Positions 4,838-46,531 of a DNA stretch of 64,000 nucleotides are shown here, piece after piece. Under the pieces are notes generated by a model. It ran no database searches. It was not told the DNA's origin and saw nothing but the letters and a program-made list of their open reading frames with translations. The stretch is taken from the sequence record NC_019408.1; one strand, written 5' to 3'. Position 1 is the first letter of the stretch; every line of letters begins with the position of its first letter. The translations under genes were made by a program, and so were the position numbers.

Positions 4838-5584
4838 GTGTCTTTTGGTCAATTCTCCGCCGACGCCCGCGCCCCGCTGTCGAAAGCCGCCATGCTGGAC
4901 GCCCTGCCCGCCGCCCGCCGCGACACTCTGGTCAAGGCCAGCAAGCCGGCGCGAAACACCCTCGATTACACGACGTCGGACGGCGTGCGCCGCGTGCGCC
5001 TGCATGACACCGACGTTCTGACCTTCCATGTCAACGGCGCCGTCGAGATCAACACGGGCGGCTGGAATACCCTGACCACGCGCGACCGCATCAACGCCTT
5101 CGCCCCGCCTCACGTGCGCGTCTACAGCGACAAGGGCCGCGCCATGGTCCGCGCCATGCCGGCCGGTAGCGAGGCCGTCACGTGGTCCAGCCCCGCCGCG
5201 TCCAAGCCGTTCGCCAAGCGCGCCACCGTCCACCCGGACGGCCGAATCGAAGTGGACGCCACCGTCAAGGAACTGGAGGCGATTCCTGCCCTCATCCGCC
5301 GCTATCTGGAGGCCTTCAAGGCCGGATTCCCGTTCAACTCGTCGGGCGACCCCTGGATGACGCCCGGCGCCCTCGTCGCCCCTGAAACGGCCCTGGATTG
5401 GCTGGGCGCCGACAGCGGCAAGCCGTACCTGTTCGACTCGATCCTGTTTCACGCCCATGTTGCGGCCGGCCTGACCGAAGAGGGCGCGGCCTATTACATG
5501 CGCGACGCCGCCCGGCGCGGGATCGACAAATTCAACCTTGGCCGCATCCGGCGCTATCTCAAGCGTTGCCTTCGCGAAGCCTAG
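4838..5584 (+). CDS. Hypothetical LTR protein
   Basis: AAGGAA RBS, GTG start; INTGGWNTLTTRDRINAF motif. Confidence 0.75.
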   Translation: MSFGQFSADARAPLSKAAMLDALPAARRDTLVKASKPARNTLDYTTSDGVRRVRLHDTDVLTFHVNGAVEINTGGWNTLTTRDRINAFAPPHVRVYSDKGRAMVRAMPAGSEAVTWSSPAASKPFAKRATVHPDGRIEVDATVKELEAIPALIRRYLEAFKAGFPFNSSGDPWMTPGALVAPETALDWLGADSGKPYLFDSILFHAHVAAGLTEEGAAYYMRDAARRGIDKFNLGRIRRYLKRCLREA

Positions 5585-5593
5585 GACCCTCCG

Positions 5594-5625
5594 GCCGCGC
5601 CTCCCCTGGCGCGGCCTTTCTTTTT
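5594..5625 (+). terminator. Intrinsic terminator
   Basis: GGCCGCGC/GCGCGGCC stem followed by TTTCTTTTT. Confidence 0.75.
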
Positions 5626-5636
5626 CCGTGTACGCG

Positions 5637-5667
5637 TTAACCTGTTGTTAAGACTTTATCCGCTAGT
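5637..5667 (+). promoter_or_regulatory. CtrA-box early promoter
   Basis: Perfect TTAA-CCTGTTG-TTAA followed by GCTAGT. Confidence 0.8.
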
Positions 5668-5714
5668 GTCCCTTTGCCGGCGCACTTCCGCGCCCTCACC
5701 TGGAGATTTTCCCC

Positions 5715-6335
5715 ATGGCCCGCCTGATCAAAGCCAAGACCGCCGCCGAACAAGCCGAAGCCCTCGCCAGCCTGCGCAAGATGATCAAGCCGGGCGACAC
5801 GGTTTATCCCGTGCTCCGCCACGTCTCGACCTCCGGCATGTTGCGGGTCATTGACCTGATTATCCCGGTCACCGTCACCCAAACCGACACCTTGCCGGCC
5901 GATGCGCGCGGCTTCAAGATCGGCGTTCAAGCCTATGCGACCCCGCCGGAGCGCAACGCCCCCCGCGCCTTCTCGACCGGAACCGTAACGGGTTTCGACG
6001 CCGACACCGTGACCATTGCCTATCAGGCCACCGCCGACGGCCGGGGCGACGCGGAGTCGGTGACGTGGCCCCGTGGTCAGGTCAAGTTCTACCGCAAGAG
6101 CACGCGCCCCGGCGTCCGCTCGATCGGCTGGCTTGCCGCGAAGGCCATGGGCGACACCTTCGACGCCGACCGCCAAGGAATCAAGGTCGGCGGGTGCGGT
6201 ATGGATATGGGCTTTCACCTCGTTTACAGCCTGGGCCGCACCCTGTGGCCGAACGGGACGAAAAAGCCCCATGGCTCGCGCAATGGCGAGCCGGACCGTG
6301 ACGGCGGTTATGCGCTGAAACATTCCTGGCTTTAA
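5715..6335 (+). CDS. Hypothetical LTR protein
   Basis: GGAG RBS; RHVSTSGMLRVI and GCGMDMGFHLVY motifs typical of a phage hypothetical family. Confidence 0.8.
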   Translation: MARLIKAKTAAEQAEALASLRKMIKPGDTVYPVLRHVSTSGMLRVIDLIIPVTVTQTDTLPADARGFKIGVQAYATPPERNAPRAFSTGTVTGFDADTVTIAYQATADGRGDAESVTWPRGQVKFYRKSTRPGVRSIGWLAAKAMGDTFDADRQGIKVGGCGMDMGFHLVYSLGRTLWPNGTKKPHGSRNGEPDRDGGYALKHSWL

Positions 6336-9546: not shown

Positions 9547-9939
9547 ATGGCCCGCCCTTCTGACCTGCTCAACGTCAACGCCGCCCGCGTCCTGGCTTGC
9601 CTGGAAGCCCTGGCCGGCGTCGTTAAGACCGCCCCGGAAACCGATCGCGCCGCCTTCTCCTACCTGCTGGACGCGGCCGAATTCGTCGCTTCCTGGCGCC
9701 GCAACCATACGGAAACCGATCGCCGTCGCGCCTACGGTGCAGCGTGCGCGGCGCAAGCCCTGGCCCTGACCAATGCCTATCAGCCCGCGACCATGCAAGG
9801 CGGGGCGGTGCGCCGCGCTCTGGGCGCCTATGCCGCCGCCCTTAAGCTGCTGCTGGACGGTGAGCCGGTGCAAGCCGTGCGCGCGGCCGAAGGCGCCGCC
9901 CAGAGCGTGCGCGGGCGCTTCGCTAACACCCGCATCTAG
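9547..9939 (+). CDS. Hypothetical Ala-rich LTR protein
   Basis: ORF between two promoters. Confidence 0.7.
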   Translation: MARPSDLLNVNAARVLACLEALAGVVKTAPETDRAAFSYLLDAAEFVASWRRNHTETDRRRAYGAACAAQALALTNAYQPATMQGGAVRRALGAYAAALKLLLDGEPVQAVRAAEGAAQSVRGRFANTRI

Positions 9940-9970
9940 TAACCTTCTGTTAAGACCCCCTGGCCTATAG
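9939..9970 (+). promoter_or_regulatory. CtrA-box early promoter (GTAA-N7-TTAA)
   Basis: Followed by CCTATAGT. Confidence 0.7.
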
Positions 9971-9996
9971 TCGGGGGGTCGCAAGGAGACACCCAC

Positions 9997-10188
9997 ATGA
10001 CCCGCCCCGGCCCCGCCTCGCTCCTCTCGCCCGCCGCCACCTTCTCGGCGCATAACCTGACCCTTCCGGGCGCTCGCCCTATGCCCCTGCCCAAGGCGCA
10101 AGGCCTGACCCTTCGCCAGTGCGTCGCCCTGGGCGCTGGCCTTGGCGCTCTGGCCTATGTCGCGTTGCGCGCGCTGGGCGTGCTCTGA
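9997..10188 (+). CDS. Small membrane protein
   Basis: AAGGAG RBS; C-terminal transmembrane helix. Confidence 0.7.
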   Translation: MTRPGPASLLSPAATFSAHNLTLPGARPMPLPKAQGLTLRQCVALGAGLGALAYVALRALGVL

Positions 10189-10645
10189 CCTGACCCCCGG
10201 CGCCCCCGGTCGCCTCGCGGTAGGGCTGTCCCATATTGAGACGGCCCTACCGGGGTAGTGTTTCTTTTTGGGACGAGGGACCCAAAGGCCCCCTACGTTA
10301 ACCATTTTTGGCGGCGCCCCCCGGCGCCTCAGGATAGCGTTGAACTTTTCGGTTGACATAATCAGACCCTCAGGCGAAGAAGGGCGCGTTCAGGCCGAGC
10401 GGCGCCCCCGACTAACCGCCGGTCCAGGCCCCATCCCTTCTCCCCACGTCCCAGTCCACGGGATGTAGGGACCGGGGGTGGGGCCTTTTTATTTTCCGGT
10501 CGGGGACCCGCCGGGAAGGCGTTTTCAAAACCCAAACGCTAAATCGACCCTCAAAAAATTTCCAAAATCATAAACCCGGTTGACAGAACCAGACTGGCTG
10601 CTAAGTGTTGCTCCACGACACGCCAACGCAAGCCCAGGAGGCTCC

Positions 10646-11386
10646 ATGACCGACACCAACACCACCAACACCACCGCCCGCTTCGCCCCGTTCGACTGGC
10701 GCGGCTTCATCGCCTTCCCGGCGGATGTCGACGTCGCCAAGATCGTCCAGAGCGTCTACGCCCGCAGCCAGCCGCGCGGCCTGGGCATGCTCCACTTCCA
10801 GGCCGGCCCGCTGGAAGCCGACCGCGTCGCCGGCGCCATCGCCCAGGCGGACGAGAAGTTCACCGCCGATCAGGCCGGTCCGACCCTCGACTATTCGGGC
10901 GAGCCCCGCGAGAGCAAGGCCACCTTCTTCGACTTCGACTATGTCGACGGCCGCTGCGTCAAGTTCCGCCTCTACCGCGACCTCAACACCGGCGCCTACT
11001 ACACCGACGTCGAATGGTACGACCACGTCTTCATCGACGTCCTGGCCCTGGTCGCCGACACCTTCGGCGTCAATGATACGCAGGCCTCCCAGATCATCGC
11101 CGACACCGAACTTGCCAAGAAGGCCAAGGCCAAGGACGAGTTCGACGTCAAGGCCGCCAAGGCGATGCCGCTGCTGCGCCAAATCCGCAAGGACGGCCCG
11201 TTGCGTTTCCTGCGCGACAGCGACGAGTTCAAGGCCATCGCCGCCAAGCCGAGCATCGAGTTCGCCTACGACCTCGACGGCGATCCGCTGCTGGCCACCA
11301 AGTACAACTACGACGACAACACCGTCACCTTCAACCTCGACGCCGGCGGCCACAAGCTGCTGGCCGCCGACACCGTCACGGCCTGA
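10646..11386 (+). CDS. Hypothetical protein
   Basis: AGGAGG RBS; upstream TTGACA-N17-TAAGTG promoter at 10580. Confidence 0.8.
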   Translation: MTDTNTTNTTARFAPFDWRGFIAFPADVDVAKIVQSVYARSQPRGLGMLHFQAGPLEADRVAGAIAQADEKFTADQAGPTLDYSGEPRESKATFFDFDYVDGRCVKFRLYRDLNTGAYYTDVEWYDHVFIDVLALVADTFGVNDTQASQIIADTELAKKAKAKDEFDVKAAKAMPLLRQIRKDGPLRFLRDSDEFKAIAAKPSIEFAYDLDGDPLLATKYNYDDNTVTFNLDAGGHKLLAADTVTA

Positions 11387-11394
11387 TCGTCACC

Positions 11395-12141
11395 ATGACC
11401 ACCGCCCCCGCCAACGACATCCTGACGAGCGATCCGAGCGGCTATGCCCTGCTCGCCGCGCGCGAGACCCTGGCCATCGCCCTGTTCAGCCAAAAGCAGT
11501 TGGTCAGCGCGCCGTCGAAGGTCTTCGGCGGCGGGGGCTACGGCCTGTCGACCTGGGCGCAAATCTCGCCTGAGCAGCGCAACGGCTGGCGGGTGGAGGC
11601 CGACAAGTACGTCACCGAGCAGGCCGGCGACGTCACCGCCGTGACCAAGGACCAGAAGCGCAACCTGGAGGAATGGGAGCGCGAGATGATGGCCCTGGCC
11701 GACGGCCACGATCCGGACGGCTATTTCGACGCCAAGGACGACCGCGCTGGCAAGACCATCGCCCAGCACTACCGCCAGGAGGTGCCCTACGCCCACAAGC
11801 TGACCGGCGACGAACTCCTCAAGGCCTGGGAGACCGCCGACAAGCTGGGCCGCCACCTGCCCGCCTTCCCGACCGACTATTTCGACCCGGTCATGGCTGA
11901 GAAGGTCGCCCGCCGGCAGTTGACCGAGTGGGAGGCCGCCATCATGGCCCACAAGGTCGGAGCCTCCATCAGCGCCTGGGCCGACTATCGTTTCGGCGTG
12001 CCGTTCCACTTCCACTTCCCCCTGGACGACATCAAGGTCTTCGAGACCTACATCGTCACGCCGGGCGGCATGGTCGCCTCCGTGCCAGCCATGACCGACG
12101 CCGACAAGGTCCGCTATGCCGGCGCCTGGGGCAAGGTCTGA
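11395..12141 (+). CDS. Hypothetical protein
   Basis: 248 aa; strong codon bias. Confidence 0.8.
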   Translation: MTTAPANDILTSDPSGYALLAARETLAIALFSQKQLVSAPSKVFGGGGYGLSTWAQISPEQRNGWRVEADKYVTEQAGDVTAVTKDQKRNLEEWEREMMALADGHDPDGYFDAKDDRAGKTIAQHYRQEVPYAHKLTGDELLKAWETADKLGRHLPAFPTDYFDPVMAEKVARRQLTEWEAAIMAHKVGASISAWADYRFGVPFHFHFPLDDIKVFETYIVTPGGMVASVPAMTDADKVRYAGAWGKV

Positions 12142-12224
12142 TGGATCGTCTCGACCGCTTCGTCCTCGCCGCCTTCGTCATCACCCTCGGCTGTTTCGCC
12201 GTTCAAGCCTGGATTCTCATCTGA
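12141..12224 (+). CDS. 27-aa membrane peptide
   Basis: Start/stop overlaps on both sides; hydrophobic. Confidence 0.5.
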   Translation: MDRLDRFVLAAFVITLGCFAVQAWILI

Positions 12225-12799
12225 TGAACCGCCGCAATTTCCTGACCGCCATCCTCGCCACGCCCTTCATCAGCGCGATCGCGCCGGGCGCCCTGGCGGC
12301 GGGCCACAAGACCATCGACCTGGGCGGTCAGCCGCTCAGCGTCTCCTTCCTGAAGGAGATCAGCCGCGAGCAGGGCGCGCTCGTGATGAACAAGCGCATG
12401 CGCAACCTCTTGTCGGCGTCGTCGCGCAATCCCGCGACGGAAGGCCAGATGGTCTGGGACAAGAACGAGTTCGGCCAGCGGATCATGAAGCTGGGTGACG
12501 TTCCGATCATCCCCACCGACTACACGGGCGGCCCGGTCGTCCAGCAGGTCATCGACTTCGAAGGCCCCGAGGACGACCTGCGCACGGAAATCCTGGTCCT
12601 GTCGCCCGAAGCGGCCAAGCTGGCACTGTCCTGGGAGACCGATTGGTCCAACCGCGTCGACGCGGCGGGCATGACGGACACCAACGAGGGTCCCTACGAC
12701 TACCGGGGCATGCCGGACGTCGCGGGCATCAACCTGCTCAAGAGCCGCTCCGACGTCCTTGTCCTCAAGGGCGTTCCGAAGAAGGCTCTGGTCGCCTGA
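12224..12799 (+). CDS. Tat-signal protein carrying a segment paralogous to the major capsid protein
   Basis: MNRRNFL...ALAA signal; MNKRMRNLL...WDKNEFG...QQVIDF aligns with the capsid protein's MSKRMRNLL...WDKDEFG...QQVIDF. Confidence 0.8.
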   Translation: MNRRNFLTAILATPFISAIAPGALAAGHKTIDLGGQPLSVSFLKEISREQGALVMNKRMRNLLSASSRNPATEGQMVWDKNEFGQRIMKLGDVPIIPTDYTGGPVVQQVIDFEGPEDDLRTEILVLSPEAAKLALSWETDWSNRVDAAGMTDTNEGPYDYRGMPDVAGINLLKSRSDVLVLKGVPKKALVA

Positions 12800-13077
12800 T
12801 GCGCTTCTTCGGCTTCCTCCTCACCGTGGCCCTGGTCACCCTGCCGTTCGCCCTGGCGGCGTGCGGCGGCCCGATCGAGACCACCGACAACGTCATCGCC
12901 ACCACCAAGGAAGGCTGCGCGGTCCACAAGATCGTCCGCCGCCAGGGCATGCTCTCCGAAGAGGTCTTCACGACCATCTGCCCGAACGGCGCGGCCCGCA
13001 CCGAGTGGGAGACCACGCGCATGATCGGCAAGACGGTGACCACCGAAAAGCACGCTGTCGACACCCCGGCCCGCTGA
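12799..13077 (+). CDS. Lipoprotein
   Basis: Signal peptide with lipobox LAAC. Confidence 0.75.
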   Translation: MRFFGFLLTVALVTLPFALAACGGPIETTDNVIATTKEGCAVHKIVRRQGMLSEEVFTTICPNGAARTEWETTRMIGKTVTTEKHAVDTPAR

Positions 13078-13535
13078 TGCCCAACCTCCCCTCGCGCTAC
13101 GATCACGAGCAGGTCATCGCCCTCTACGAGAGCGGCATGACCTTCATGGAGATCGCCGAAAAGATCGGAGGCCAGCACAACTCGCTGCGCACGATCGTCG
13201 CCAAGAAGGCGCCGCACCTGCTGCGCCCGGCTGGCCCGCGCCCGAAGTTCGACCACGCCGAGGCCGTCAACCTCTACCTGAGCGGCGAGGAGAACTACGA
13301 GACCCTGGCTCAGCGCTACGGCGTGTCGCGCTCGGCGGTCCAGCAGATCGTCAGCGGCAAGGCCAAGGGCCGTCGCCCGTCCAAGCGCCGGCCCTCGCCG
13401 CGCGCCAAGATCAGGATCGACGAACTGCTCGCCCTCAAGGCCAAGGGTCTGCGCAACGCCGATCTGGCGCGTCACTTCGGCTGCTCACCGGCCGCCATCT
13501 CCAACACCTTCAGGAAGCTGGAAGCCAAGACATGA
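13077..13535 (+). CDS. Multi-HTH DNA-binding protein
   Basis: Three HTH-like units: TFMEIAEKIG, YETLAQRYGVSRSAV, NADLARHFGCSPAAI. Confidence 0.8.
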   Translation: MPNLPSRYDHEQVIALYESGMTFMEIAEKIGGQHNSLRTIVAKKAPHLLRPAGPRPKFDHAEAVNLYLSGEENYETLAQRYGVSRSAVQQIVSGKAKGRRPSKRRPSPRAKIRIDELLALKAKGLRNADLARHFGCSPAAISNTFRKLEAKT

Positions 13536-13726
13536 GCAGCGAGTTCGACCGCAGCGCGCAGATCGAGGTCATCGCCATCGGGCTCTACGAGAGCAAGGTG
13601 CGCGCCCTGGGTCCCGACAGCGCCAAATACTGGCCCTCCTGGGAAGGGCAAGTCCCCCTGGAGCGCGCCCGTTGGCGCCAGCAGGCCAAACGCATGATCC
13701 TCGAAAGCCGGGACCAGAAAATCTGA
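13532..13726 (+). CDS. Hypothetical protein
   Basis: ATGA overlap; resembles the next gene (IAIGLYES vs LALGLYES). Confidence 0.65.
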   Translation: MSSEFDRSAQIEVIAIGLYESKVRALGPDSAKYWPSWEGQVPLERARWRQQAKRMILESRDQKI

Positions 13727-13965
13727 TGACCGTCACCTGCCCCGCCTGCCTCGCCCAATGGGACGGCCTGGACGAAGCCGTCTCCGTCGCCGAGGTCGAA
13801 CTCTTGGCGCTCGGGCTCTACGAGAGCCAGCAGCGCATGTTCGGCCCCGGCGTTGACGAGCCCCGCAAGTCCTGGTCCGAAGCGCGCCTGTCCACCCGTC
13901 AGACCTTCCGCGCCATGGCCATGAAGCTGATCGACGAGCACCTGGAAAACCGCGAGCCCGCATGA
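13726..13965 (+). CDS. Hypothetical protein
   Basis: TGATG overlap; CPAC motif. Confidence 0.65.
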   Translation: MTVTCPACLAQWDGLDEAVSVAEVELLALGLYESQQRMFGPGVDEPRKSWSEARLSTRQTFRAMAMKLIDEHLENREPA

Positions 13966-14174
13966 CCGACCACGCCTACTACCTGCCGGCCCTGCGCCGG
14001 ATGCGCAACGCCATCTACGAGATCAGGGATCAGGGGCTGCGCTCCTGGGCCGCCATCCAGTACAAGTTCGTGGAGTCGCGCCTGCGTGATCGGCGCTCCA
14101 CCGAGGCCGACATCGCCGTGCTCGAACTGCACATGACCGATGAGGACCGCGCCCGGCGGCCGTTGGCGGCATGA
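13962..14174 (+). CDS. Hypothetical protein
   Basis: ATGA overlaps. Confidence 0.65.
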   Translation: MTDHAYYLPALRRMRNAIYEIRDQGLRSWAAIQYKFVESRLRDRRSTEADIAVLELHMTDEDRARRPLAA

Positions 14175-14590
14175 ACATTTTCAAGCGCCTCCTTTACCGG
14201 ATCGCCGGCGTCGCGCCGATCAGCGTCCCCAAGACCGCCGCCCTGGTCGCCGCCGTCTGGTGGGCCACGCGTATGGACGTCGACAAGGCCGTCGATCCGG
14301 GCACCAGCGACGAGGAGAAGCTGCTCATCGTCGACACCTTCCAGGACGAGCTTTGCCGGCTGATCGACGGGCGGCTGCGCCGCATCGGCAAGAAGGACTG
14401 GTTCTCGCTTGACTTCGACTATACGCCCGACCCGTTACTGGCCGAGGCCCTGCGCAGGGCCGGCGTCTCCCGCAGCGTCTGGAGCGACTTGTGGCTCAAC
14501 AAAACCCGCATGACCGTCCAGCGCCATCAACTCAGCGTCAAGCCGGGCTACGGCCTGGAGCGCTACACCATCCCGATCGGAGAATCCTGA
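14171..14590 (+). CDS. Hypothetical protein
   Basis: LDFDYTPDPLLAEAL motif typical of phage hypothetical proteins. Confidence 0.7.
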   Translation: MNIFKRLLYRIAGVAPISVPKTAALVAAVWWATRMDVDKAVDPGTSDEEKLLIVDTFQDELCRLIDGRLRRIGKKDWFSLDFDYTPDPLLAEALRRAGVSRSVWSDLWLNKTRMTVQRHQLSVKPGYGLERYTIPIGES

Positions 14591-14592
14591 CC

Positions 14593-14883
14593 ATGGCCCT
14601 CTTCCGCAAGAAGCCCGTCGTCATCGAGGCCATCACCTTCGACGAACTGGTCCAGCACGGCCTTTCCGTCCACGGTGCCCATCTCGTCAACGGCATGCCC
14701 TGGTCGTTCACCTACAAGGGCCAGCCGATCACCCACGAGAATGACGACACCTACCTGATCCCGACCATGGAGGGCACCATGGCCTTCCGTCGCGGCGACA
14801 TGCTGATCACCGGCGTCAAGGGTGAAATCTACCCCTGCGAGAAGACCATCTTCGAGGCGACCTATGAGCAAGTCCAAGCCTGA
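14593..14883 (+). CDS. Conserved phage protein (RKKPVVIEA family)
   Basis: FRKKPVVIEA...IPTMEG...GD.LITGVKGEIYPC...IFEATYE. Confidence 0.85.
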   Translation: MALFRKKPVVIEAITFDELVQHGLSVHGAHLVNGMPWSFTYKGQPITHENDDTYLIPTMEGTMAFRRGDMLITGVKGEIYPCEKTIFEATYEQVQA

Positions 14884-15148
14884 TCTGCTGGCGGTCGGCG
14901 AGCGCCGGCACGAGACCTGCCGCTTTGGTCGCCTGACCGAGCAGTGGGAAGTCGATCCGCGCACCGGCAAGGAGACGCCGGGCACGGCCCCGCTCTGCAC
15001 CTGGGAGCCCGAGGGCGATGTGCCGCCGGCCCACAAGCGGGTCTGGGGCGGGATCATCGAGCTTGACCGCGACTGCGCCGTCTGCTTCGCCTACCGCGAG
15101 TTGCCGGCCGCGCGCTTTGTCCTGCCGCCCAAGGATGCCGCCGCGTGA
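14864..15148 (+). CDS. Cys-containing hypothetical protein
   Basis: ORF in the operon. Confidence 0.6.
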   Translation: MSKSKPDLLAVGERRHETCRFGRLTEQWEVDPRTGKETPGTAPLCTWEPEGDVPPAHKRVWGGIIELDRDCAVCFAYRELPAARFVLPPKDAAA

Positions 15149-15555
15149 CCCACGAAGACGCCGACATGTTCGAGGAGTTCTTCCCGGAGAACCGCCCGCC
15201 GGTCAAGTCGTGGGGCTTCTCCAAGCACCCGCGCTACCGCGCCCAGCGCGTGGGCTCGTCCGGCAGTAGCGCCCCGCCCTTCTTCGACTGGCGCGTCAGC
15301 CGGCGCCTGCCGCTGCCGTGGGTCAACATCTACGTCCCGCTGCGCCTGTGGGTCGTCGACAAGCCGGGCGAGATGCCCGTCAAGCGCTGGGCGCGCTACA
15401 ACACCTCCGAGGGGGCCGAGAAGTTCATCGCCACCAAGCCGGCCTTCTTCCCGAAGAAACCCATCGGCGTCCTCAACGACGTTCTCTACTTCAACGAGCA
15501 GGGCGCGGGCGTGATCCTCGGCGCCGCGAAGGTCCGCAAGGAGCGCCTCTATTGA
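15145..15555 (+). CDS. Hypothetical protein
   Basis: GTGA overlap. Confidence 0.65.
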   Translation: MTHEDADMFEEFFPENRPPVKSWGFSKHPRYRAQRVGSSGSSAPPFFDWRVSRRLPLPWVNIYVPLRLWVVDKPGEMPVKRWARYNTSEGAEKFIATKPAFFPKKPIGVLNDVLYFNEQGAGVILGAAKVRKERLY

Positions 15556-16229
15556 CCCATCTTCGCCTCGGCCAGTTCGACCGCGACTACGCCACTCAGA
15601 AGACCCAGTGGGTCCCGCGCGGCTTCTCCAAGCAGTCCGACCGCTACGTCTATCCCAACACCGGGTGGTCGTGGACCGACTGGGGCGGCGAGGTCAAGGA
15701 CACCTACGACACCCTGGAGCAGGCCAAGTCCGCGATCACCTCCGGCTACCTGAAGGACATGATCAAGGCCCAGGACATCGTCGACATCGTCTTCCTGGAG
15801 GTCAAGGTCGACCGCCAGATCGTCGAGAAGAAGTCGGTCAAGGCCTACACCGGCGCCGGCAAGCTCAAGGCCTTGACCGAGCCGGTCTTCCACGTGGGTC
15901 CTGGCAAGACGGCGCTCACCATGGGCGACTACGTCTTCCTCAACCTGAACGGCCGCAGCGAGCCCGACATCTTTGGCCGCGTGATGGCGATCCACAAGGA
16001 CATCGCCACCGTCTGGATATTGAACGGCGCCTGGACGCTGCTGATGCGCCTGGACGGCCTGGACCTCTTCATCGCGGCGGACGATCGCTCGGGCATGGGT
16101 GGCAAGCCCATCCATCTCCATTACGTCGGCCCGCTGCCCGATCCCACCATCGCCCCCCGCGACTACGAAGGCCAGCTTGAGGCCCTGCGCGGCATGCAGT
16201 CCAACGGCTGTCACTACAACAAGGCCTGA
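15552..16229 (+). CDS. Hypothetical protein
   Basis: TTGA overlap start; codon bias. Confidence 0.65.
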   Translation: MTHLRLGQFDRDYATQKTQWVPRGFSKQSDRYVYPNTGWSWTDWGGEVKDTYDTLEQAKSAITSGYLKDMIKAQDIVDIVFLEVKVDRQIVEKKSVKAYTGAGKLKALTEPVFHVGPGKTALTMGDYVFLNLNGRSEPDIFGRVMAIHKDIATVWILNGAWTLLMRLDGLDLFIAADDRSGMGGKPIHLHYVGPLPDPTIAPRDYEGQLEALRGMQSNGCHYNKA

Positions 16230-16233
16230 TCCC

Positions 16234-17088
16234 ATGACCGACCAACCCCTCGACCCGCTCGACCGCACCATCCTCGACCTCCTCCAGGAGGAAGGCGCCG
16301 AGGTCCTGATCGAGTTCGCCCCGCTCGTCGGCCGGCTGATCAAGGTCGCCTCCAAGGTCAAGCGCTTCGGCAACGGCCGCAATCCGTTCGAGCCCGACGC
16401 CAAGCCCAACTTCGAGCTTCTCCAGGACGAGGTCGGCGACTTCGAGGCCCTGGTCGACATCCTGATCGAGCGTGGCGTCCTGACCCGCGAGGGCATCGAC
16501 GCGCGCAAGGTCTGGAAGCGCGGCATGCTGCGCGAGCACAAGACCCTGCCGGACGCGGCTTTCCTGCCCCCGGTCAGCGTGCCGTCGCCGCTTGACGACT
16601 TCCCGCCCGGCAACCCGGTCGTCCAAGCGGCCAAGGCCGCGCGCAACGGCGGCTATGTCGCCCTGTTTGGCGGGCACGCGCCGTCGGCCTTCCCGGATTA
16701 CGACCTGCCGCCGTTGGAGATACGCCGGGCGGTCCCCGATGAGCCGGGCTTCCACTCGACCACCGACGGGGTCACCGTCGAGCGCTTCGACGTGCGCCCG
16801 CCGAGCCCTGCGGTGACCGGCAAGGACCTCTACGAGGCCTATTACACCAAGGCGCGTGTCGCCGACCATCTGCCCTCCTGGGATGATCTGCCGCCGGACA
16901 ACCAGCGCCTGTGGGATGAAGCGGCCAAGAAGGGGCTGACCAAGCCTGAGTCGCGCGGCAAGGCCCTCTACACCCGCTACTGCGACACCCAGGGCATCCA
17001 CTCCAACCGCTTCCCCGGCTGGAGCGAACTGTCGGCCGAGAACCAGCGCCTGTGGGACGAAGCCGCGAAAGCCGGGGTTAACCTGTGA
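16234..17088 (+). CDS. MazG-like NTP pyrophosphohydrolase domain plus repeated C-terminal module
   Basis: LQEEGAEV...LQDEVGDFEALVDIL (EEXXE/EXXD); two copies of GKxLY...PxWxxL...NQRLWDEAAK. Confidence 0.6.
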   Translation: MTDQPLDPLDRTILDLLQEEGAEVLIEFAPLVGRLIKVASKVKRFGNGRNPFEPDAKPNFELLQDEVGDFEALVDILIERGVLTREGIDARKVWKRGMLREHKTLPDAAFLPPVSVPSPLDDFPPGNPVVQAAKAARNGGYVALFGGHAPSAFPDYDLPPLEIRRAVPDEPGFHSTTDGVTVERFDVRPPSPAVTGKDLYEAYYTKARVADHLPSWDDLPPDNQRLWDEAAKKGLTKPESRGKALYTRYCDTQGIHSNRFPGWSELSAENQRLWDEAAKAGVNL

Positions 17089-17321
17089 TCGAAGAGACCC
17101 TCGTCACCGCGCCGATCGACCCCGTGGATCGCAAGGAGCGCTTCCGCAAGTACGCCAAGGCCCGTCACCTGCACGAGACCGACTTCGGCTGCTCGGCCTG
17201 GAGCCCTGAGGAGCAGGAGCAGTTTCGCGACGGCGTCAAGGCGCGCATCGCCCGGATCGAGGCGTCCGATCCGGACTTCCCGGCCCTGTTCGAGGAGACC
17301 CGGATGCGGAGGGCGTCGTGA
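17085..17321 (+). CDS. Hypothetical protein
   Basis: GTGA overlap. Confidence 0.6.
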   Translation: MIEETLVTAPIDPVDRKERFRKYAKARHLHETDFGCSAWSPEEQEQFRDGVKARIARIEASDPDFPALFEETRMRRAS

Positions 17322-17536
17322 AGCGCGCCCAGTGCAAGGCCGGGCGGCTCCTGCTGGGCTGGACCCAGGCTGAACTTGCCGACGCCGCCGGCTGCGCGGT
17401 CTCCACCGTCGCCGACTACGAGCGCGGCGCCCGGCGCACCGATGAGAGCATCATCCGCCGCTTCGTCGACTCCTTCTCCCGCCGGGGCGTGCGCTTCACC
17501 CGCACCTCCGTCATCCACCCTGAGTTCAAGGCCTGA
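17318..17536 (+). CDS. XRE-family HTH regulator
   Basis: AGRLLLGWTQAELADAAGCAVSTVADYERG. Confidence 0.85.
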   Translation: MKRAQCKAGRLLLGWTQAELADAAGCAVSTVADYERGARRTDESIIRRFVDSFSRRGVRFTRTSVIHPEFKA

Positions 17537-19054: not shown

Positions 19055-19795
19055 CTACTCCTTGAGATACCCGGCCTTGATCGCCTCGGCCCGCGTGTCG
19101 GCCTTGCTGAGAATAGTGTCGCCGCCCCGGCGGATTAACTTGACGCCCTCGTAAAGCTGGACCTCCAGCTTGCCGTCCATCTGGATGCGCCCCAGGCGCA
19201 CCGGGCCGCCGGCGTAGGGCTCGGGCGGATCGCCCACGCCGATCTCGATCATGCCCTTGTCGGCCGTCTGCACCAGGAGCGTGGCGTGCCCGCCGATCCA
19301 CACCGGGTTCCAGATTACGAGCCACATCGAGCCTCCGTCAGCGCCCGCGTCGCTCAGCCGGCGCGCCAGGGTCAGCGCGTAGTCCTCGCAGTCGCCGCAG
19401 AAGCCGTTTTCGGCGTAGAAATCGCTCCTCTGGTAGAGGATGTCGTCCGAAACGTAGGTGTAATGGCTCCGAAGGGCCGAATCCTGCGCCGAAACCTCCG
19501 AAAACGTCAATTTTCGGCCGGCTTTTGCCTTGCAGAGCGGATTTTCGGTGAATTTTTGACAGAATTCAGTGATTCCGTCGATCGAGACCTCGACTTTGCC
19601 CCCGTAGTCGCGTTTTTCCTCGCCGCTCGCGGCGATCAGCTTGACTTGAGGACAATGACCGGCGTCGCGGGCCGGCGCGGTGATGATCGGGACATCCTGG
19701 CCGCCGGCGACGACCTGATGGGTGCTCCAGGCGAACCAGCCGAGCGGCAGGAGCAGGCCGAGCGAGAAAAAGACGATCGCGATCCAGCGCCACAT
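19055..19795 (-). CDS. Secreted or membrane-anchored transglutaminase-like cysteine protease (BTLCP, peptidase C93)
   Basis: N-terminal signal or transmembrane helix; GDCEDYALT...GHATLLVQT catalytic Cys/His motifs. Confidence 0.8.
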   Translation of the reverse strand: MWRWIAIVFFSLGLLLPLGWFAWSTHQVVAGGQDVPIITAPARDAGHCPQVKLIAASGEEKRDYGGKVEVSIDGITEFCQKFTENPLCKAKAGRKLTFSEVSAQDSALRSHYTYVSDDILYQRSDFYAENGFCGDCEDYALTLARRLSDAGADGGSMWLVIWNPVWIGGHATLLVQTADKGMIEIGVGDPPEPYAGGPVRLGRIQMDGKLEVQLYEGVKLIRRGGDTILSKADTRAEAIKAGYLKE

Positions 19796-32150: not shown

Positions 32151-32249
32151 AAGAGAATTCCCTCGGTGACTGCCGGTCGACCGAGGGACAGACCGAGACG
32201 GGGTCCGTCTCTCAACACGGCCGGCGCGAACACCAAAAGGAGCAAGCCA

Positions 32250-33185
32250 ATGGCTGCTGTGACCCTGCTGCAAGCGTCCGAAATGGCGCTCGGCAACGAC
32301 GAAGTCAAGCGCGCCGCGATCATCGAGCTTTTCGCGACGCCCGACATCCTGCGCGTGATCCCGTTCCTGGACATCCAGGGCGGCGCGTACACCTACCTGC
32401 AAGAAGGCCAGCTCTCGGGCGTCGCCTTCCGGGGCATCAACGAGTCCTACGACACGTCGACCGGCGTGATCAACCCGCAAGTCGAGCGCCTGCGCATCGT
32501 CGGCGGTGACCTGGACGTCGACAAGGCCCTGCTGAAGACCCACGGCGCCAACGTCCGCTCGCAGCAGGAGCGCATGAAGGTCAAGGCTCTGAGCCTGTAC
32601 CTCGCCGGCAAGATCGTCAACGGCGACTCGGAAAACGACCCGCGTGAGTTCGACGGTCTGCGCAAGCGCATCACCGGCTCGCAACTCTTCCCGGCCGGCA
32701 ACACCTCGGGCGGCGACGCCCTGTCGCTGGCCGTCCTGGACGAAGCCATCGACGCGGTCGACGGTGCGACGCACCTGATCATGTCGAAGCGCATGCGTAA
32801 CCTGCTCGCGCAGTCGGCCAACAACCCCAACGTCACCGGCTACGTGACCTGGGACAAGGACGAGTTCGGCATGCGCGTCATGCGCTACGCCGACCTGCCG
32901 ATCCTGGTGACCGACTACGACGACAAGAACCAGCAGGTCATCGACTTCAACGAAGCCAACCCCGGCGGTGGCGCCGCTGTCGGCACCTCGATCTACGTCG
33001 TCAACATCGGCGACGAAGGCGTGGTCGGCCTCCAGAACGGCATCATGGAGATCGAAGACCTCGGCGAGATCGACGCCAAGCCGGTTCTGCGTACCCGCGT
33101 GGAATGGCTGGTTTCGCTGGCCGTCCTGAGCGGCCGTGCTGCCGCTCGCGTCTGGGGCATCAAGAAGGCCGCTGTCACCCGCTAA
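32250..33185 (+). CDS. Major capsid protein (HK97 fold)
   Basis: AAGGAG RBS; FRGINE..., GGDLDVDK, PREFDGL and final R.RVEW motifs; position. Confidence 0.92.
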   Translation: MAAVTLLQASEMALGNDEVKRAAIIELFATPDILRVIPFLDIQGGAYTYLQEGQLSGVAFRGINESYDTSTGVINPQVERLRIVGGDLDVDKALLKTHGANVRSQQERMKVKALSLYLAGKIVNGDSENDPREFDGLRKRITGSQLFPAGNTSGGDALSLAVLDEAIDAVDGATHLIMSKRMRNLLAQSANNPNVTGYVTWDKDEFGMRVMRYADLPILVTDYDDKNQQVIDFNEANPGGGAAVGTSIYVVNIGDEGVVGLQNGIMEIEDLGEIDAKPVLRTRVEWLVSLAVLSGRAAARVWGIKKAAVTR

Positions 33186-38046: not shown

Positions 38047-38070
38047 GTCACGAAACCAGGGTTTTGTGAC
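38047..38070. promoter_or_regulatory. GTCAC-N14-GTGAC operator-like palindrome
   Basis: CTAG-GTCACGAAACCAGGGTTTTGTGAC-CTAG. Confidence 0.8.
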
Positions 38071-38110
38071 CTAGCCCTCCCGTCCATCCTCCCGTCAAAG
38101 GTCTCCCGCG

Positions 38111-41100
38111 TTGGTCGATCTCGTCGCCGGCACGCCCGCTTCCGTTGCCTATTCCGGCAGCGCGGTGGAGTATGTCGTCAAGGCTGCGGGTCAGGTCGAC
38201 ATCTACCTGTGGGGTGGCGCGGGCTCGGGCGGCTACTATGCCAACGGTTCGGGCAACGCCAACAAGTTCGGCGGCGCGGGCGGCTACACCAATGCCCGCT
38301 TCATGGTCGATGTCGGCGACATCATCACCGTCGAGGTGGGCCAGGGCGGGCGCGTCCCGACCGGCTCGGGCACCACCGCGTCTGCCGGTGGCCTGGGCGG
38401 CTGGCCTGATGGCGGCTTCGGGGCGATCAACTCTGGCGCGGCTTGGGTTGCTCCTGGCGGCGGCGGCGGTTCGACCCGCATCTATAAGAACGGCGATCTG
38501 GTCGCCGTCGCGGGCGGCGGCGGCGGCGCCACGGGCTTCTACAGCGGCGGCAACGGCGGCGGCGCGCTCGGCATGGCGTCGACCGACGCCTCGTCCGGCG
38601 CGGGCGGCACGCAGCTTGCCGGCGGCGTGGCCGGCTCGGGCACGCTGGCTGTCCAGTCCGGCGGCTACTTCCGGGGCGGTCAAGCCAGCACCGCCGCGAA
38701 CGTCTCCAACGCCTACACGGGCGGCGGCGGCGGCGGCGGCTTCTATGGCGGCGCGTCCAACGGCGGCGGCTCGGGCGCGCACGGCTCGGGCGGCGGCGGC
38801 TCGGGCTGGCTGTCCCAGGCCACCGACGTCGCGGGCGCGTGCCGTGTTGCGCCGCAGGACGGCACGGGCGCTCCGATCAACCCGGCGGGCATCACCATTC
38901 CGGCCGGCACCGCGCAAGGCGGGGTCGGCCCCACGGTCGCAAGCACGGGCTGGGCCTCGATCACGCCGGGCGGCAACGGCTTTGCCTACCTCGCCCTGAC
39001 CGACATCGGGGCCACGGCCTCGGCCCTGCCGTCGGGCAGTAGCACGCTCAGCTATACCGGAACCCGGCAGGTCTACGAGGTCACCGACATCTGCTCGGTC
39101 GACTTCGAGATGTGGGGCGGCGGCGGCGGCGGCGGCTTCTATACCTCTGGCGGCAACGCCGCGCGCTTCGGCGGCGCGGCCGGCTACACCAAGCTCACCC
39201 GCATCCTCTATCCGGGCGACATCGTCGAGGTCGAGGTCGCCCAGGGCGGTCAGGCCCCGAGCGGCGTCAGCCAGACCGGCGGCGCGGGCGGCTGGCCCAA
39301 TGGGGGCTCCGGCGGACGCCCGGCGGCGGCGGCGCCCAACTTTGGTGGCGGCGGCGGCTCGACCAACGTCTGGGTCAACGGACGTCTGCTGGCGATCGCG
39401 GCCGGCGGCGGCGGCTCGACCGGCTTCTACTACGGCGGTGTGGGCGGCGGGCGCTTTGGCCTCCAGTCGACCGACCAGACGACCAACAACGGCACCGGCG
39501 GCACCTGGGGCGGCGTCAACGCGGTCAGCAGCCAGGGTCGCGGCTATTTCCTGCAAGGCGGCCACGGCTCGCCGATCGAATCCCCGACCGTCGCGATCGC
39601 CACGGCTGGCGCGGGCGGCGGCGGCGGCTATTACGGCGGCGGGGGCGCCAAGGGCGGCTCGGGCACGCACGGCTCGGGCGGCGGCGGCTGCGGCTACACC
39701 TCGGGCGATAACACCTACAACCGCGTTATGCAGGCGGGGACGCCTGCCACCGGCGCGCCCTACGATCCGGGCACCAAGCCGGCTGGCGTGGGCGTGGGCG
39801 GAACGGGCGGCTCGTCGGCTGGCACCACCGGCCCTGGCGGCGACGGTGCGATCAACCTGACCGTCACCCCCCTGACGAGTCTGCCGACCCTGCCGACTGG
39901 CAAGACGGTCTTCAGCTTCACCAACGCGGCTGAGCATTACGTCGCCGGAACCACGGGCCTGATGGCCCTGAAGGTCTGGGGCGCGGGCGGTGGCGGCTGC
40001 ACGCGCTCGTCTGGCACGCTGCGGCGCGGCGGCGGCGGCGGCTTCTTCAAGGTCGACATCGTCAAGATCAACCAGGGTGACATCGTCACCTTCGTGGTCG
40101 GCGAGGGCGGCAAGGGCATGCCCGGCCCGAACCTGGGCGGACGCGGTGGCTTCCCGAACGGCGAATACGGCAACGCCGGCGACGCCACGGGTGGCAACGC
40201 CGGCGGCGGCGGCTCCTCCCACGTCTACATCAACGGCAAGCTTGTTGGGGTCGCGGGTGGCGGTGGCGGTGGCGCGATCTCGTTCGACGGCGGCACGGCG
40301 GGTCTGGCGTCCTATCCGCCCAGCGGCGACGGCTTTGGCCCCTCCGGCTCGTCCCTCTTCTATGGCGGCTTCTCGCCCCAGCGCGGCGCGGAAGGCAACA
40401 ACCGTGGCGTCTTTATGCTGGCCGGCATCGGTCAGATTGACGGCGGCACGATCGACACGCCCAACAACCTCGCGGGCGGCGGCGGTGGCGGCGGCTACTG
40501 GGGCGGCGCCGGCTCGGCGCCCAACAACTCCCGCTTCCAGCCCGGCGGCCCTGGCTCCACCTACATCACCGCCAACTATGTGGGCACCCAGCAGGCGGGC
40601 ACCACCAGCGGCACCAACCTGTCCGATCCCGATTGGGGGTCCTCGGCCAGCGTGGGTGGCCAGGGCTCTAACACGCCCGGCAACTCCGTCACCAATGGTG
40701 GGCACGGGCGCATCGTCTGCTCGTTCGACATCCCGACTCTGCTGAACGAAAGCGTCAGCGCCAACGTCCCCGTGGCCTCGGCGGTCCAGACCTTCATGGT
40801 CGGCAACGACGGCACCATCACGCTCAAGGCCTGGGGCGCGGGCGGCGGCGGCTCGATGATGACCGCCAACAGCGGCTCGGAACTGGCCGGCGGCGGCGGC
40901 TATGCGGCGGCGACGCTCGACCTCAAGAAGGGCCAAATCCTGCGCGTCTATAACGGCGCGGGCGGCAATGGCGCGGTCTATACCAGCGGCGTCTCTGGGG
41001 CCTTCGTTGGCACCGGCGGTCCCGGCGGCTGGCCCGATGGTGGTCAGGGCGGCATGCACGTCTCGGGCATCTTCGGCGGCGGCGGCGGCTCCTCGCGCGT

Positions 41101-44100
41101 CTATGTCGACGACATCCTGCTTCTGGTCGCGGGCGGCGGCGGCGGCGGCGGCATCCATACGGCCACGACCACCGCCGGCGGCGGCGGTGGCACGACGGGC
41201 GGCAACTCCGACACCGTCACGGTCTTCAACACCGGCGGCCAGACCTATCGCGGCGGCTGGAACACCGGCCGCACGACCGACGCGACCACCTCGGGCAGCG
41301 GTTTCAAGGGCGGCGCGGGCTATCTGGCAGGCAGCACGGCCTCGACCAGCAACATCGCCCATGGTGGCGGTGGCGGCGGCGGCCTCTATGGCGGTTCGGG
41401 CTCCGGTTCCACCAACGCCTCCTCGACCGGCTGGCTGGGCGGCGCCGGCGGCTCGGGCTTCGTCGCGGACGGCTGGGACGTCACCGAGTACGACTACCTG
41501 CGCGACTACGTGGTCTTGCAGTATAGCTTCGACACGCCCAGCGGCGTGGCCGACGATGCGCGCAAGCTGAACACCCTGCTGCTCGATACGGCCCCGACGA
41601 CGACGACCTCCGGCCCGAAGTTCGGCACCACCTGCCTGACCATGTCTGCCGGCCACTTGACGACGGACATCCCGGCGATCGGCCAGCAGGACTTCACCCT
41701 GGAAGGTTGGTTCAACCCCGCGTCCTTGACGACCGGGGTCATGATGATCATCGGGGACCAGAGCATCAACGGCCTGTCCCTGCACTACTACCCCTCGGCC
41801 ACGGTCCTGGGCCTGCGGTACAACAACGCCGATCCCTCGGGCGCCACGCTCGACACCAAGTACACCGACTCTGCGCGCGCCGCCAACGTCTGGGCGCACT
41901 ATGCGATCTCGCGCGACATCAACGGCACGCGCGTCTACAAGGACGGCATCCTCGTCTCGACGACGACCGGCTCGCCGTTCTCGATCACCGCCACCACCCT
42001 GACCCTGGGCAACTACCGGTCGATCGCGGGGGCCAGCACGCGCTTCGTCGGCAAGATCGACGAGGTGCGCCTGACGGTGGGTGTCGCCCGCTACCGCCAG
42101 AACTTCAAGCCCCAGCAGTTCCGCAACAAGCGCACCCTGGGCCTGACGGGTGCGAGCACGGTCCAGGCCGGCAGCAGCGGCAACGGCCTGCCGGCCTCCA
42201 CGGGCGTCTCGGGCTATGCCGCCGGTCGCGGTGTCGGCGCGGCCGTCAAGACCACGCCCGCCAATGGCAACCCTGGCGGCGACGGGCAGATCAACTATTT
42301 CCTGGCGACCTCGACGGTCGCGGCGACGGGTCCGATCGGCACCGTCCAGGTCGGTGGACTGATCACGGCCGCCGCCGGCGCCTTCTATCCGCTGCCGGCG
42401 GCCGGCACCACCGTCGTCCATCCCTATACCGGCTCGCGCTACAACTACTCGGTCGACGATCCGGGTGGGGCGCGCATCAAGGTCGAGATGTGGGGCGCGG
42501 GCGGCGGCGGCTGCTCGGCGACCAACTCCAGCACCTCGACGGGTGGCGGCGGCGGCGGCTATACCGTCTACGAGATGGACCTTGTCCAGGGTGACAAGAT
42601 CACGCTCCAGACGCCGTCCGGGGGCTTCGGCTCCAACACCGCCGGCGGCAGCGACGCCTCGGGCATCAATGCCGGCGGCTATCCCGACGGTGGCAACGGC
42701 TATCGCCCCGCCTTCACCGCGTTCAACGGCGGCGGCGGCGGCTCTGCGCGCATGTGGGCGGGCGGCGATCTGGCGGCCGTGGCGGGCGGCGGCGGCGGCG
42801 GCGCCTATGGCTCGGTCGCCTATGACTTCGCGGGCGGCCCCGGTGGCGGTTCGTCGGGCGGCTCGGGTGGCTACGACGGCGTCAACGCGACCTTCCCCAA
42901 CACCGGCGGCACCCAAAGCGTCGGTGGCACGGGCACGCCCAACGGTGTCTCGGGCTCGTTCATGCAAGGCGGCGTGGGCGGCACCACGATCAGCGTCGCC
43001 AACAACGGCCCCGGCGGCGGCGGTGGCTATTACGGCGGCGGCGGCGGCGGCGCCTACAAGGCGGCCGGCGGCGGCTCGGGCTACATCAACACCACCCTGA
43101 GCGGCTATCGCACCGGCTCGACCTCGGGCGGCTCGGGCAACCTGCCGGGCGGCATGGGCTCGCCCAACTACGCCTCGGGCATCGGGGTCGGTTCGAACGG
43201 CAAGGCGGGCGTTCGCGACGGCGGCAACGGCCGGATCGTCCTGACGGTCATCACGCCCACGCCCGGCAACGCCGCCGGTCTGATCGGCACCGTCAACGTC
43301 TCGGGCCTGAACACCTTCGGCACCCTGGTCGGCACCCCGACCGGCGCGATCGGCACGGTCAATGTCGTCGTCCCGGTCGGCACGTCCGGTCAGCCGGCCT
43401 TTGCGTCGGGCGTCCTGCCGGTCATCGGGCTGGGTCCGCCCGAGACGATCCCGCAGGCCCAGGCGATCGTCATCGTTCCGATCAACGACCAGACCTCGCT
43501 CCTGGTCAGCCCGCCCGATCACGCGCCGTTCGCCATCGACGCCGAGGGCACGGGTGATCTGGGCACGATCACCGTCACGTCGTTCAACTCGACCCAGACG
43601 GCCGCCGCCAACGCCACCCCCGCCCTGCCGACGGTCACGCTCACCGCGCCCGAGGCTGACGCGGTCGAAATCCCGCCGGTCCTGGCGTCGGGCGCGCTCG
43701 TCACCATCCCGGTCACCGCGCCCGAGGCGTCCACCCAGGTCATCCCCCCGGTCGAGACCAGCGGCGACATCGGCACGATCACGCTCGTCACGCTCAACGG
43801 CGACGCCTCGACCAACAACAACGTCGCCACCTCGGGCGACATCGGCACGATCACGCTCACCGCGCTGGATGGCAGCGCCCAGGGTGATGATCTGGCCGAG
43901 GGCCTGATCGGTACGATCACGGTCACCGTCCCCACGGCGGTCGTTCAGCAGAGCGCCGAGGCGACCGGCGACATTGGCACCATCTCGGTCTACGCGATCG
44001 AAGGGGGTCAACCGGCTGACGCCAGCGGCGACATCGGCACGATCCAGATCGTCCCGCTGGGCGTCTCGGTCAACGCCAGCAGCGGCGACGACGTCAACCT

Positions 44101-46528: not shown

Positions 46529-46531
46529 GGC

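Follow-up and report, generated by a model that had tools for sequence, protein, structure and literature searches.

A predicted twin-arginine signal joined to a capsid A-domain in Caulobacter phage CcrRogue, and a family of signal-bearing capsid paralogs in phiCbK-like phages

What might a fragment of a capsid protein be doing behind an export signal, in a gene that lies in a non-structural left-arm operon and outside the structural module of its phage? The question is raised by gp023 of CcrRogue (JX100814 / NC_019408), a 223.7-kb phiCbK-like siphophage of Caulobacter in the genus Poindextervirus. The stretch of DNA that was analyzed, referred to here as the window, comprises bases 1-64000, the left 64 kb of this genome; positions 10500-14000 match the record at 100% identity with identical coordinates. 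The results favor the interpretation that gp023 probably is a functional accessory gene in which a twin-arginine translocation (Tat) signal is fused to the A-domain of the HK97 capsid fold, and whose product is exported to fulfill a role in the cell envelope. The view of this product as an exported, repurposed capsid domain is well supported in silico by the predicted signal, the alignments and the structural models. The features of gp023 and of the gene for the major capsid protein (MCP) with which it was compared are as follows.

12224..12799, + strand: CcrRogue gp023, Tat-type signal and capsid A-domain, 191 residues, from the open reading frame (ORF) and its translation; labeled 'putative TAT signal protein' in GenBank
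12224..12298, + strand: predicted twin-arginine signal peptide, residues 1-25, with an RRNFL motif, an uncharged h-region and A-L-A before the likely cleavage site
12323..12559, + strand: conserved A-domain block, residues 34-112 (helix-strand-helix, then three strands), homologous to MCP residues ~155-234 at 51% identity
12560..12796, + strand: residues 113-191, comprising an A-domain strand, helices 128-148 and 166-174, and a C-terminal strand, from the alignment and the secondary structure of the model
32250..33185, + strand: CcrRogue MCP gene (gp70), no signal peptide; phrog_212, E 1e-85; Pfam PF20911 GP7

The amino-terminus of gp023 reads MNRRNFLT. Residues 2-7 (N-R-R-N-F-L) agree with the Tat consensus (S/T)-R-R-x-F-L-K near the amino-terminus, and the arginine pair is followed by 23 residues free of Asp, Glu, Lys and Arg, with A-L-A at positions 23-25 in accordance with an h-region that closes in an A-x-A motif. 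A loose Tat-like filter applied to all six frames of the window passed only four of 1672 candidate N-termini, among which gp023 was the sole clean case in a real gene. The protein contains no cysteine at all and therefore has no lipobox of the bacterial lipoprotein type; the lipobox at the locus belongs to the neighboring gene, gp024. The putative Tat assignment draws on the motif and on its conservation across the protein family described below.

Residues 34-112 of gp023 were matched by tblastn to positions 32709-32948 (+) within the MCP gene (42/82 identical, 51%; five gap positions; E 2e-19), which was the sole other significant place for gp023 within the window. Pairwise BLASTP between gp023 and the MCP of CcrRogue gave an E value of 7e-22, and gp023 also matched positions 148-225 of phrog_212 ('major head protein') with E 9.5e-8, which places it among homologs of the MCP family. 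The first-pass annotation of this DNA had recognized both the twin-arginine signal (RRNFL...ALA) and the capsid similarity at 12224-12799, and both were borne out. Its alignment of about 80 residues likewise stands for residues 34-112, but it was too short: similarity extends to the last ~12 residues of gp023, which pair with the strand at the C-terminus of the MCP. The MCP ORF has an alternative GTG start at 32166, 28 codons upstream of the ATG (32166-32249). The ATG at 32250 is the more likely start because all 73 ordinary MCPs collected here align from an ATG-type N-terminus, of which the sequence MAAVTLLQ in CcrRogue is typical. The gp70 protein is the listed counterpart of phiCbK gp68, which was detected in virions by mass spectrometry (Gill et al., 2012; PMC3556154).

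The same annotation had described gp023 as built from part of the phage's own MCP, a view that did not survive comparison with other MCPs. The protein is 52-55% identical to the MCPs of CcrPW, Colossus, BL57 and several Brevundimonas phages, compared with 51% for that of CcrRogue. Within the block shared by gp023 and the MCP the DNA is 68% identical and third codon positions are 56% identical, with GC content at third positions of ~0.9 in both genes, and synonymous sites read as near saturation. Thus, by sequence comparison gp023 is about equally distant from all MCPs of the phage group, which is indicative of an old divergence within an older family and not of a recent copy of the CcrRogue MCP. 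Most likely, gp023 originated from a full-length Tat-signal capsid paralog of the kind present in BL57, Colossus, Kabachok and Papperlapapp, and not from the MCP of CcrRogue.

As searches of PDB chain sequences with gp023 and with the MCP produced no matches, domains were mapped by using predicted models. The AlphaFold2 model of gp023, built on a 22-sequence alignment, had a predicted local distance difference test score (pLDDT) of 82.3 and a predicted template modeling score of 0.75; low confidence was confined to the signal peptide and pLDDT was 83-93 across residues 34-112. The elements of the model (strand 29-32, helix 40-47, strand 52-56, helix 57-66, and strands 76-80, 86-90, 93-98 and 120-126) follow the identical order in the model of the full-length paralog BL57_025 (strand 151-154, helix 162-171, strand 177-181, helix 182-195, and strands 198-203, 209-214, 222-227 and 251-257). 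The latter model is clearly of the HK97 fold, with 132 PDB matches at E<=0.001 that include HK97, gene transfer agent capsids and encapsulins. After the A-domain strands, BL57_025 has five P-domain strands whereas gp023 has two helices (128-148 and 166-174), and both models finish in a strand that aligns with the C-terminus of the MCP. The gp023 model has neither spine helix nor E-loop, and alignment coverage of gp023 was 0% for the E-loop region and about a quarter for the N-arm and spine regions. A complete HK97 fold consists of the N-arm, the E-loop, the P-domain with its spine helix and the A-domain; gp023 aligns with it solely in the A-domain block and at the strand that ends the protein. 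On the domain map that we assume for HK97 gp5, in which one long segment and the extreme C-terminus make up the A-domain, gp023 would be a complete A-domain whose P-domain excursion is replaced by a helical linker. The product would be expected to form an independent domain of about 18 kDa.

In Foldseek searches of BFVD, major capsid proteins ranked first for gp023 (E 1.3e-4, probability 1.00, root-mean-square deviation 3.5 Å over 116 columns). The structural support on which the capsid alignment had been made to depend therefore was obtained from the AlphaFold model and the BFVD capsid matches, with modest scores against PDB. Foldseek also returned weak matches to proteins of 175-178 residues from CcrBL10 and phiCbK, which were not treated as relatives. 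A 175-residue protein of BL10 (gp022 of that phage), which may be among those matched, and its RBC8 homolog are located near the corresponding locus; both are devoid of a signal and of sequence similarity to gp023.

The family to which gp023 belongs was recovered by an exhaustive hidden Markov model (HMM) search of 1.84 billion representatives, by tblastn against phage genomes and by two profile searches. Seventeen distinct proteins combine an N-terminal export signal with MCP-derived sequence, the signal containing RR in 13 and KR in the remaining four. Ten are full length (321-365 residues) and all of these possess RR, as in MNRRTFF, MNRRSFL and MHRRDLL: Colossus gp036, BL57_025, Kabachok_02020, Papperlapapp_03650, P0006, P0007, P0009, P0010, P0011 and P0025. 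Seven are cut down to the A-domain (157-214 residues), with RR in gp023, P0002 and P0003, and T-K-R in P0008, P0013, P0028 and P0039. The mature part of every truncated form starts at a common position just before the first A-domain strand. P0009 and gp023 share their first eight residues and, by inspection, small residues that mostly are Ala close the h-regions of the paralogs. All members that could be placed derive from phiCbK-like jumbo phages or phage-like contigs, and scans of genome and metagenome contigs revealed ordinary MCPs only and no cellular member of the family. Long repetitive surface proteins (P0004 with 16 Big_3 repeats, P0015, P0017 and P0020) that also were retrieved were judged to be repeat-summed artefacts of a two-sequence profile.

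The link between signal and paralog was examined in a census of the MCP-homolog ORFs in all fetched loci, which yielded 82 distinct sequences. The motif was absent from all 73 ordinary MCPs and present in all nine paralogs, each of which shows RR, two hydrophobic residues and an uncharged stretch. The ordinary MCPs are 40-100% identical to that of CcrRogue, and either have an N-terminus of the M-A-x-T-L-L type or align within a few residues of the ORF start. A canonical MCP also is present in CcrRogue, BL64, BL57, Colossus, Kabachok and Papperlapapp. gp023 thus possesses the three features by which we propose to define the family, namely an RR or KR signal, a domain derived from the MCP, and a canonical MCP encoded separately by the genome concerned. 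The full-length paralogs that were located on phage sequences, which together with their relatives carry the database labels 'major capsid/head protein' or 'hypothetical', are listed by fetched locus.

L006:17495-18460, - strand: CcrColossus gp036, full-length MCP paralog with twin-arginine signal
L014:12401-13420: BL57_025, full-length MCP paralog with twin-arginine signal
L012:2497-3507: Papperlapapp_03650, full-length MCP paralog with twin-arginine signal
L013:2497-3507: Kabachok_02020, full-length MCP paralog with twin-arginine signal

Relative to the MCP, the paralogs follow a reductive trend. A third to half of the E-loop region is lost in seven of the ten full-length paralogs, three retain it at complete length, and it is wholly lost in the truncated forms. 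By comparison, the block corresponding to MCP residues 155-234 is among the best-kept regions in most paralogs (43-63% identity). In the protein tree, branches leading to four phiCbK-group MCPs measured 0.015-0.16 and those to signal-bearing paralogs 0.04-1.4, mostly above 0.4. A single clade of 15 signal-bearing proteins was not rejected in the approximately unbiased test (p 0.585), the constrained tree being as likely as the free one, and a single origin of the family followed by repeated trimming is possible on this basis. As a separate observation, CcrPW (MH588545.1) has a second weak MCP-like place by tblastn (E between 1e-5 and 1e-10) that does not lie within its first 41.5 kb.

The gp023 gene was detected in CcrRogue and BL64 only among 50,697 phage records. 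The two copies differ by ten nucleotides, of which nine are synonymous and one nonsynonymous (ratio of nonsynonymous to synonymous rates, dN/dS, 0.035; binomial p 2.5e-5). In a search of 5.8 billion proteins, P0002 (196 residues) was 50% identical to gp023 over the full length and retained the signal M-D-R-R-S-F-L-T; it is encoded on L005, a 9.7-kb phage-like contig that is rich in small genes. The pattern of substitution indicates that gp023 is under purifying selection. The Kabachok and Papperlapapp paralogs have a dN/dS of 0.29 overall and 0.23 in the mature part, with a fast-changing signal region in which RR is kept, behavior that we take to be typical of signal peptides. Most phages whose MCPs are 96.5-100% identical to that of CcrRogue do not have gp023, and the gene also is absent from phiCbK, whose virion proteome has been described (PMC3556154). 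Papperlapapp, Kabachok and Domovoi are one species (PMC10070969) and, because Domovoi has one MCP-like place only, the signal-bearing paralog gene is judged from these genomes to be dispensable.

The genes that flank gp023 also point toward the envelope, as the first-pass annotation had noted in describing a membrane peptide on one side and a lipoprotein gene on the other; both are present.

12141..12224, + strand: gp022, hydrophobic single-span membrane peptide, 27 residues, upstream of gp023; 'hypothetical' in GenBank
12799..13077, + strand: gp024, lipoprotein, 92 residues, lipobox L-A-A-C, downstream of gp023; 'putative lipoprotein' in GenBank; matches phrog_902 (function unknown)

Five genes in a row, gp021 to gp025, are connected by TGATG stop/start overlaps, which suggests from the sequence that they are translationally coupled in a single operon. 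The operon starts just inside the 10.3-kb terminal repeat, and a scan of positions 9800-17500 for promoters and terminators revealed nothing above shuffled expectation. The content of this region differs between close relatives. In RBC8 an unannotated gp022 homolog (L003:~2132-2215) directly precedes the lipoprotein gene with no gp023 between them, in CcrBL10 (L004:~2122-2300) a gp022 homolog is followed by a second, different membrane peptide of ~31 residues in the slot, both of them unannotated, and in CcrRogue and BL64 the slot is occupied by gp023, with the 6-base sequence CTGATG at both of its junctions. From these differences gp023 is interpreted as a one-gene cassette in a variable slot. 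The full-length paralog of BL57 is located in the same left-arm neighborhood, at 12.4-13.4 kb. In that phage the gp021 homolog BL57_023 (L014:11238-12125) has an Arg/Pro-rich tail, unlike gp021 of CcrRogue, suggestive of a frameshift or of a fusion that runs into the region of the lipoprotein gene.

Genes for other envelope-directed proteins accompany the paralogs elsewhere. Colossus gp036 adjoins gp037, a transglutaminase-like cysteine peptidase with a lipoprotein-type signal that is matched by a Peptidase_C93 gene on L133, a 266-kb contig with a portal gene. A further Tat-signal protein is encoded two genes upstream of Papperlapapp_03650, and a membrane protein with two spans is encoded downstream of it. 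P0039, on L133, comes after two Tat-signal proteins, and beyond it are small membrane proteins, a trypsin-like protein with a signal-like N-terminus, the Peptidase_C93 homolog and a GH26 gene. The Tat-signal genes concerned are as follows.

L012:1581-2111: Papperlapapp_03670, Tat-signal protein MNRRTLFK...
L133:4324-5184 and 5188-5991: Tat-signal proteins ...TTRRSLFG... and ...TTRRQLFG...

Judged from gene content, the jumbo phages that carry members of this paralog family seem to possess clusters of genes for exported proteins. In CcrPW the gp037-type peptidase is retained, with no gp036 homolog at that place.

Three further observations were made in the window. A transglutaminase-like cysteine peptidase encoded at 19055-19795 (-) shares 36-41% identity with Colossus gp037 and the L133 Peptidase_C93 gene. 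The protein begins with a hydrophobic anchor, and ~440 bases separate its gene, which is upstream and divergently oriented, from a 635-residue ORF that is taken to be the portal gene. The peptidase presumably belongs to the LapG/BTLCP family, and its product would be another envelope-directed phage protein. A cluster of 24 tRNA genes occupies 48466-52917 (+), where GC content is ~60-63% compared to ~66% elsewhere. Very long ORFs of 3043 (-) and 2805 (+) residues are located at 38048-47179 in a stretch of 70-73% GC; the + strand ORF probably is a glycine-rich head-filament candidate, as described for phiCbK gp76 (Gill et al., 2012; PMC3556154).

Several explanations other than export for a role in the envelope were weighed against these data. 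Among them, the most durable is that gp023 acts in the cytoplasm before export, the A-domain mimicking the capsid and capturing a capsid-recognizing host factor, or evicting such a factor as a 'hitchhiker' through Tat. The truncated forms indeed keep the best-conserved MCP block, the Tat pathway is able to export folded proteins and complexes, and the gene is in the non-structural left-arm operon. Nevertheless, this explanation is unlikely: gp023, its neighbors and the full-length paralogs gave no PADLOC-DB matches, no capsid-sensing system has been identified for this host, the family-wide retention of the export signal suggests action outside the cytoplasm, and relatives of CcrRogue with identical MCPs do not have the gene. 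The capsid-sensing defenses that are known to us act in the cytoplasm and a simple decoy for capsid sensors therefore is less likely, as a periplasmic location fits poorly with cytoplasmic sensors.

A second possibility is that the paralog assists morphogenesis of the very long prolate head, remaining tethered to the membrane by an uncleaved signal and serving, for example, as a nucleator, a vertex protein or a chaperone. MCP paralogs are vertex proteins in other phages, for example T4 gp24, and the E-loop region is of complete length in three of the full-length Tat paralogs. Against this, the gene is missing from most phages with MCPs that are 96.5-100% identical and Domovoi, of the same species as Papperlapapp (PMC10070969), has a single MCP-like place. 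Moreover, the E-loop region is shortened in seven of ten full-length paralogs and absent from the truncated ones, the paralogs evolve much faster than MCPs, and gp023 is outside the structural module. A morphogenetic role is very unlikely on account of this distribution and the loss of the E-loop.

If gp023 instead were a relic, that is a non-functional chimera of a Tat-signal gene and a capsid gene generated by illegitimate recombination in a variable region, its location in a hypervariable slot that is filled differently from one close relative to the next, its presence in only two sequenced phages and the CTGATG repeat at both junctions would be accounted for. The selection and conservation data make this explanation highly improbable. 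Nine of ten differences are synonymous with a dN/dS of 0.035, P0002 at 50% identity keeps both length and signal, three further truncated lineages start the mature protein at the same domain boundary, and the predicted structure is compact and of high confidence, a new helical linker having taken over from the P-domain strands. Least probable of all is that gp023 blocks the Tat pathway in host takeover: a self-associating product might clog the translocase, and the sole point in favor is the combination of a Tat signal with a normally oligomerizing domain, but most assembly interfaces are lost in the truncated forms and the other, ordinary-looking Tat-signal proteins of the same phages would be blocked too.

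The preferred interpretation, an accessory protein that is exported to act in the envelope, has to accommodate a number of results that weigh against it. gp023 did not match the Tat-signal HMMs TIGR01409 or PF10518. These are short, insensitive models. P0009 scored above the TIGR01409 cut-off (17.6 vs. 16.7 bits), P0003 was just below it (15.7 bits) and four paralogs were sub-threshold with PF10518. The top three PDB matches of the gp023 model in Foldseek, all HK97-fold encapsulin shells, were weak (E 3e-3 to 9e-3, template modeling score 0.35). Homologs of gp022 and gp024 also occur in phages that do not have gp023, and hence the envelope genes provide a context and not a proven system. Colossus gp036 is an exception to the conservation of the A-domain block, which is 30% identical and bears a deletion, so that no single core is common to the whole family. 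Finally, the tree of 25 proteins did not resolve at its base and the order of events is not derivable from it; the family is small, and descent of gp023 from a full-length Tat paralog is a possibility that the approximately unbiased test did not reject.

With these provisos, a course of events can be proposed for gp023 as an exported envelope protein. During its descent the N-arm, the E-loop and the spine-helix region would have been lost and the P-domain strands swapped for two helices, with the C-terminal A-domain strand kept. The gene would be translated by coupling within the left-arm operon and the product would fold in the cytoplasm. C. crescentus has a Tat system, and as Tat, in contrast to Sec, transports proteins and complexes that already are folded, this route would suit a capsid domain. 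The protein would cross the inner membrane, after which signal peptidase may free it into the periplasm or, alternatively, the uncut signal may anchor it. There it would act by protein-protein binding via the A-domain surfaces that are used around capsomer axes. As the A-domain forms contacts around these axes, the retained surfaces probably do mediate protein-protein binding. In view of its accessory distribution and of the envelope genes around it, our best guess is a role in an envelope-level conflict such as superinfection exclusion or envelope remodeling. The data establish the homology, the signal motif and its conservation in the family, purifying selection, the confident fold and the insertion-type distribution, and export, cleavage, the binding partner and the biological role are what we infer for gp023. 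A more far-reaching proposal, and a rather doubtful one, is that phiCbK-like jumbo phages in general keep Tat-exported HK97-fold paralogs that are active outside the cytoplasm, where the A-domain might bind a component of incoming virions or an envelope structure and thereby block superinfection; more radically, it might fold around a capsid-recognizing host factor in the cytoplasm and take it out through Tat, so that a defense is disarmed.

Comparison with known systems sets gp023 apart from each of them. The phiCbK-like MCP (phiCbK gp68, CcrRogue gp70; phrog_212, PF20911, NF045672) is alike in the A-domain block (51%), the C-terminal strand and the predicted local fold, whereas gp023 has a Tat signal, a location in the accessory left arm and a long branch, and is devoid of the N-arm, E-loop and spine-helix region. 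The full-length signal-bearing paralogs share with it the twin-arginine signal, an origin in the MCP family, an accessory distribution and surroundings of envelope genes, but retain the HK97 fold in its entirety, the E-loop region often being shortened, in contrast to the lone A-domain of gp023. Encapsulins, which were top PDB matches for the gp023 and BL57_025 models, also employ the HK97 fold in a non-virion use. They are cellular, cytoplasmic, self-assembling shells with cargo, whereas gp023 is phage-encoded, has an export signal and is missing the shell-forming parts, and no cargo-type gene is evident near it; the likeness is at the level of the fold only. The vertex protein gp24 of T4 and the Ccm proteins of Staphylococcus aureus pathogenicity islands and phage-inducible chromosomal islands (SaPI/PICI) similarly are products of duplicated, diverged HK97-fold capsid genes in mobile elements. 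In contrast to gp023 they are cytoplasmic, function in capsid assembly and keep the full fold, and we know of no capsid paralog of this type with an export signal. The exclusion proteins Sp and Imm of T4, Llp of T5 and Ltp of TP-J34 resemble gp023 in being small, phage-encoded, envelope-targeted, dispensable and specified by variable accessory regions, but there is no relationship in sequence or fold, and an exclusion activity of gp023 is conjecture.

Parts of this picture have been visible before. The annotation of 2012 already recorded gp023 as a Tat-signal protein, and gene 36 of Colossus was noted solely as a diverged, translocated MCP duplicate in a paper that contains neither "TAT" nor "twin-arginine" (Gill et al., 2012; PMC3556154). 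No prior description linking an export signal to capsid paralogs was found in the searchable literature, and both the link and this rare family appear to be undescribed. One practical consequence is that paralogs labeled "major capsid protein" could mislead capsid-based phylogenies or gene calls; these labels are corrected here. The question posed by gp023 is directly testable, as the host and several phages are culturable, the gene is small and natural pairs exist with it (CcrRogue and BL64) and without it (RBC8 and BL10).

HK97-fold capsid proteins are known as cytoplasmic builders of shells in phages, gene transfer agents, satellites and encapsulins. If the phiCbK-like paralogs indeed are exported through Tat and active outside the cytoplasm, they would provide the first case of a capsid fold that functions in the periplasm, and a conserved family with the HK97 fold or a lone A-domain behind an export signal would widen the known uses of a very common fold. 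Such a family also would draw attention to the envelope of Caulobacter, a genetically well-tractable model organism, as the site of a so far unstudied layer of conflict between phage and host or between phages.

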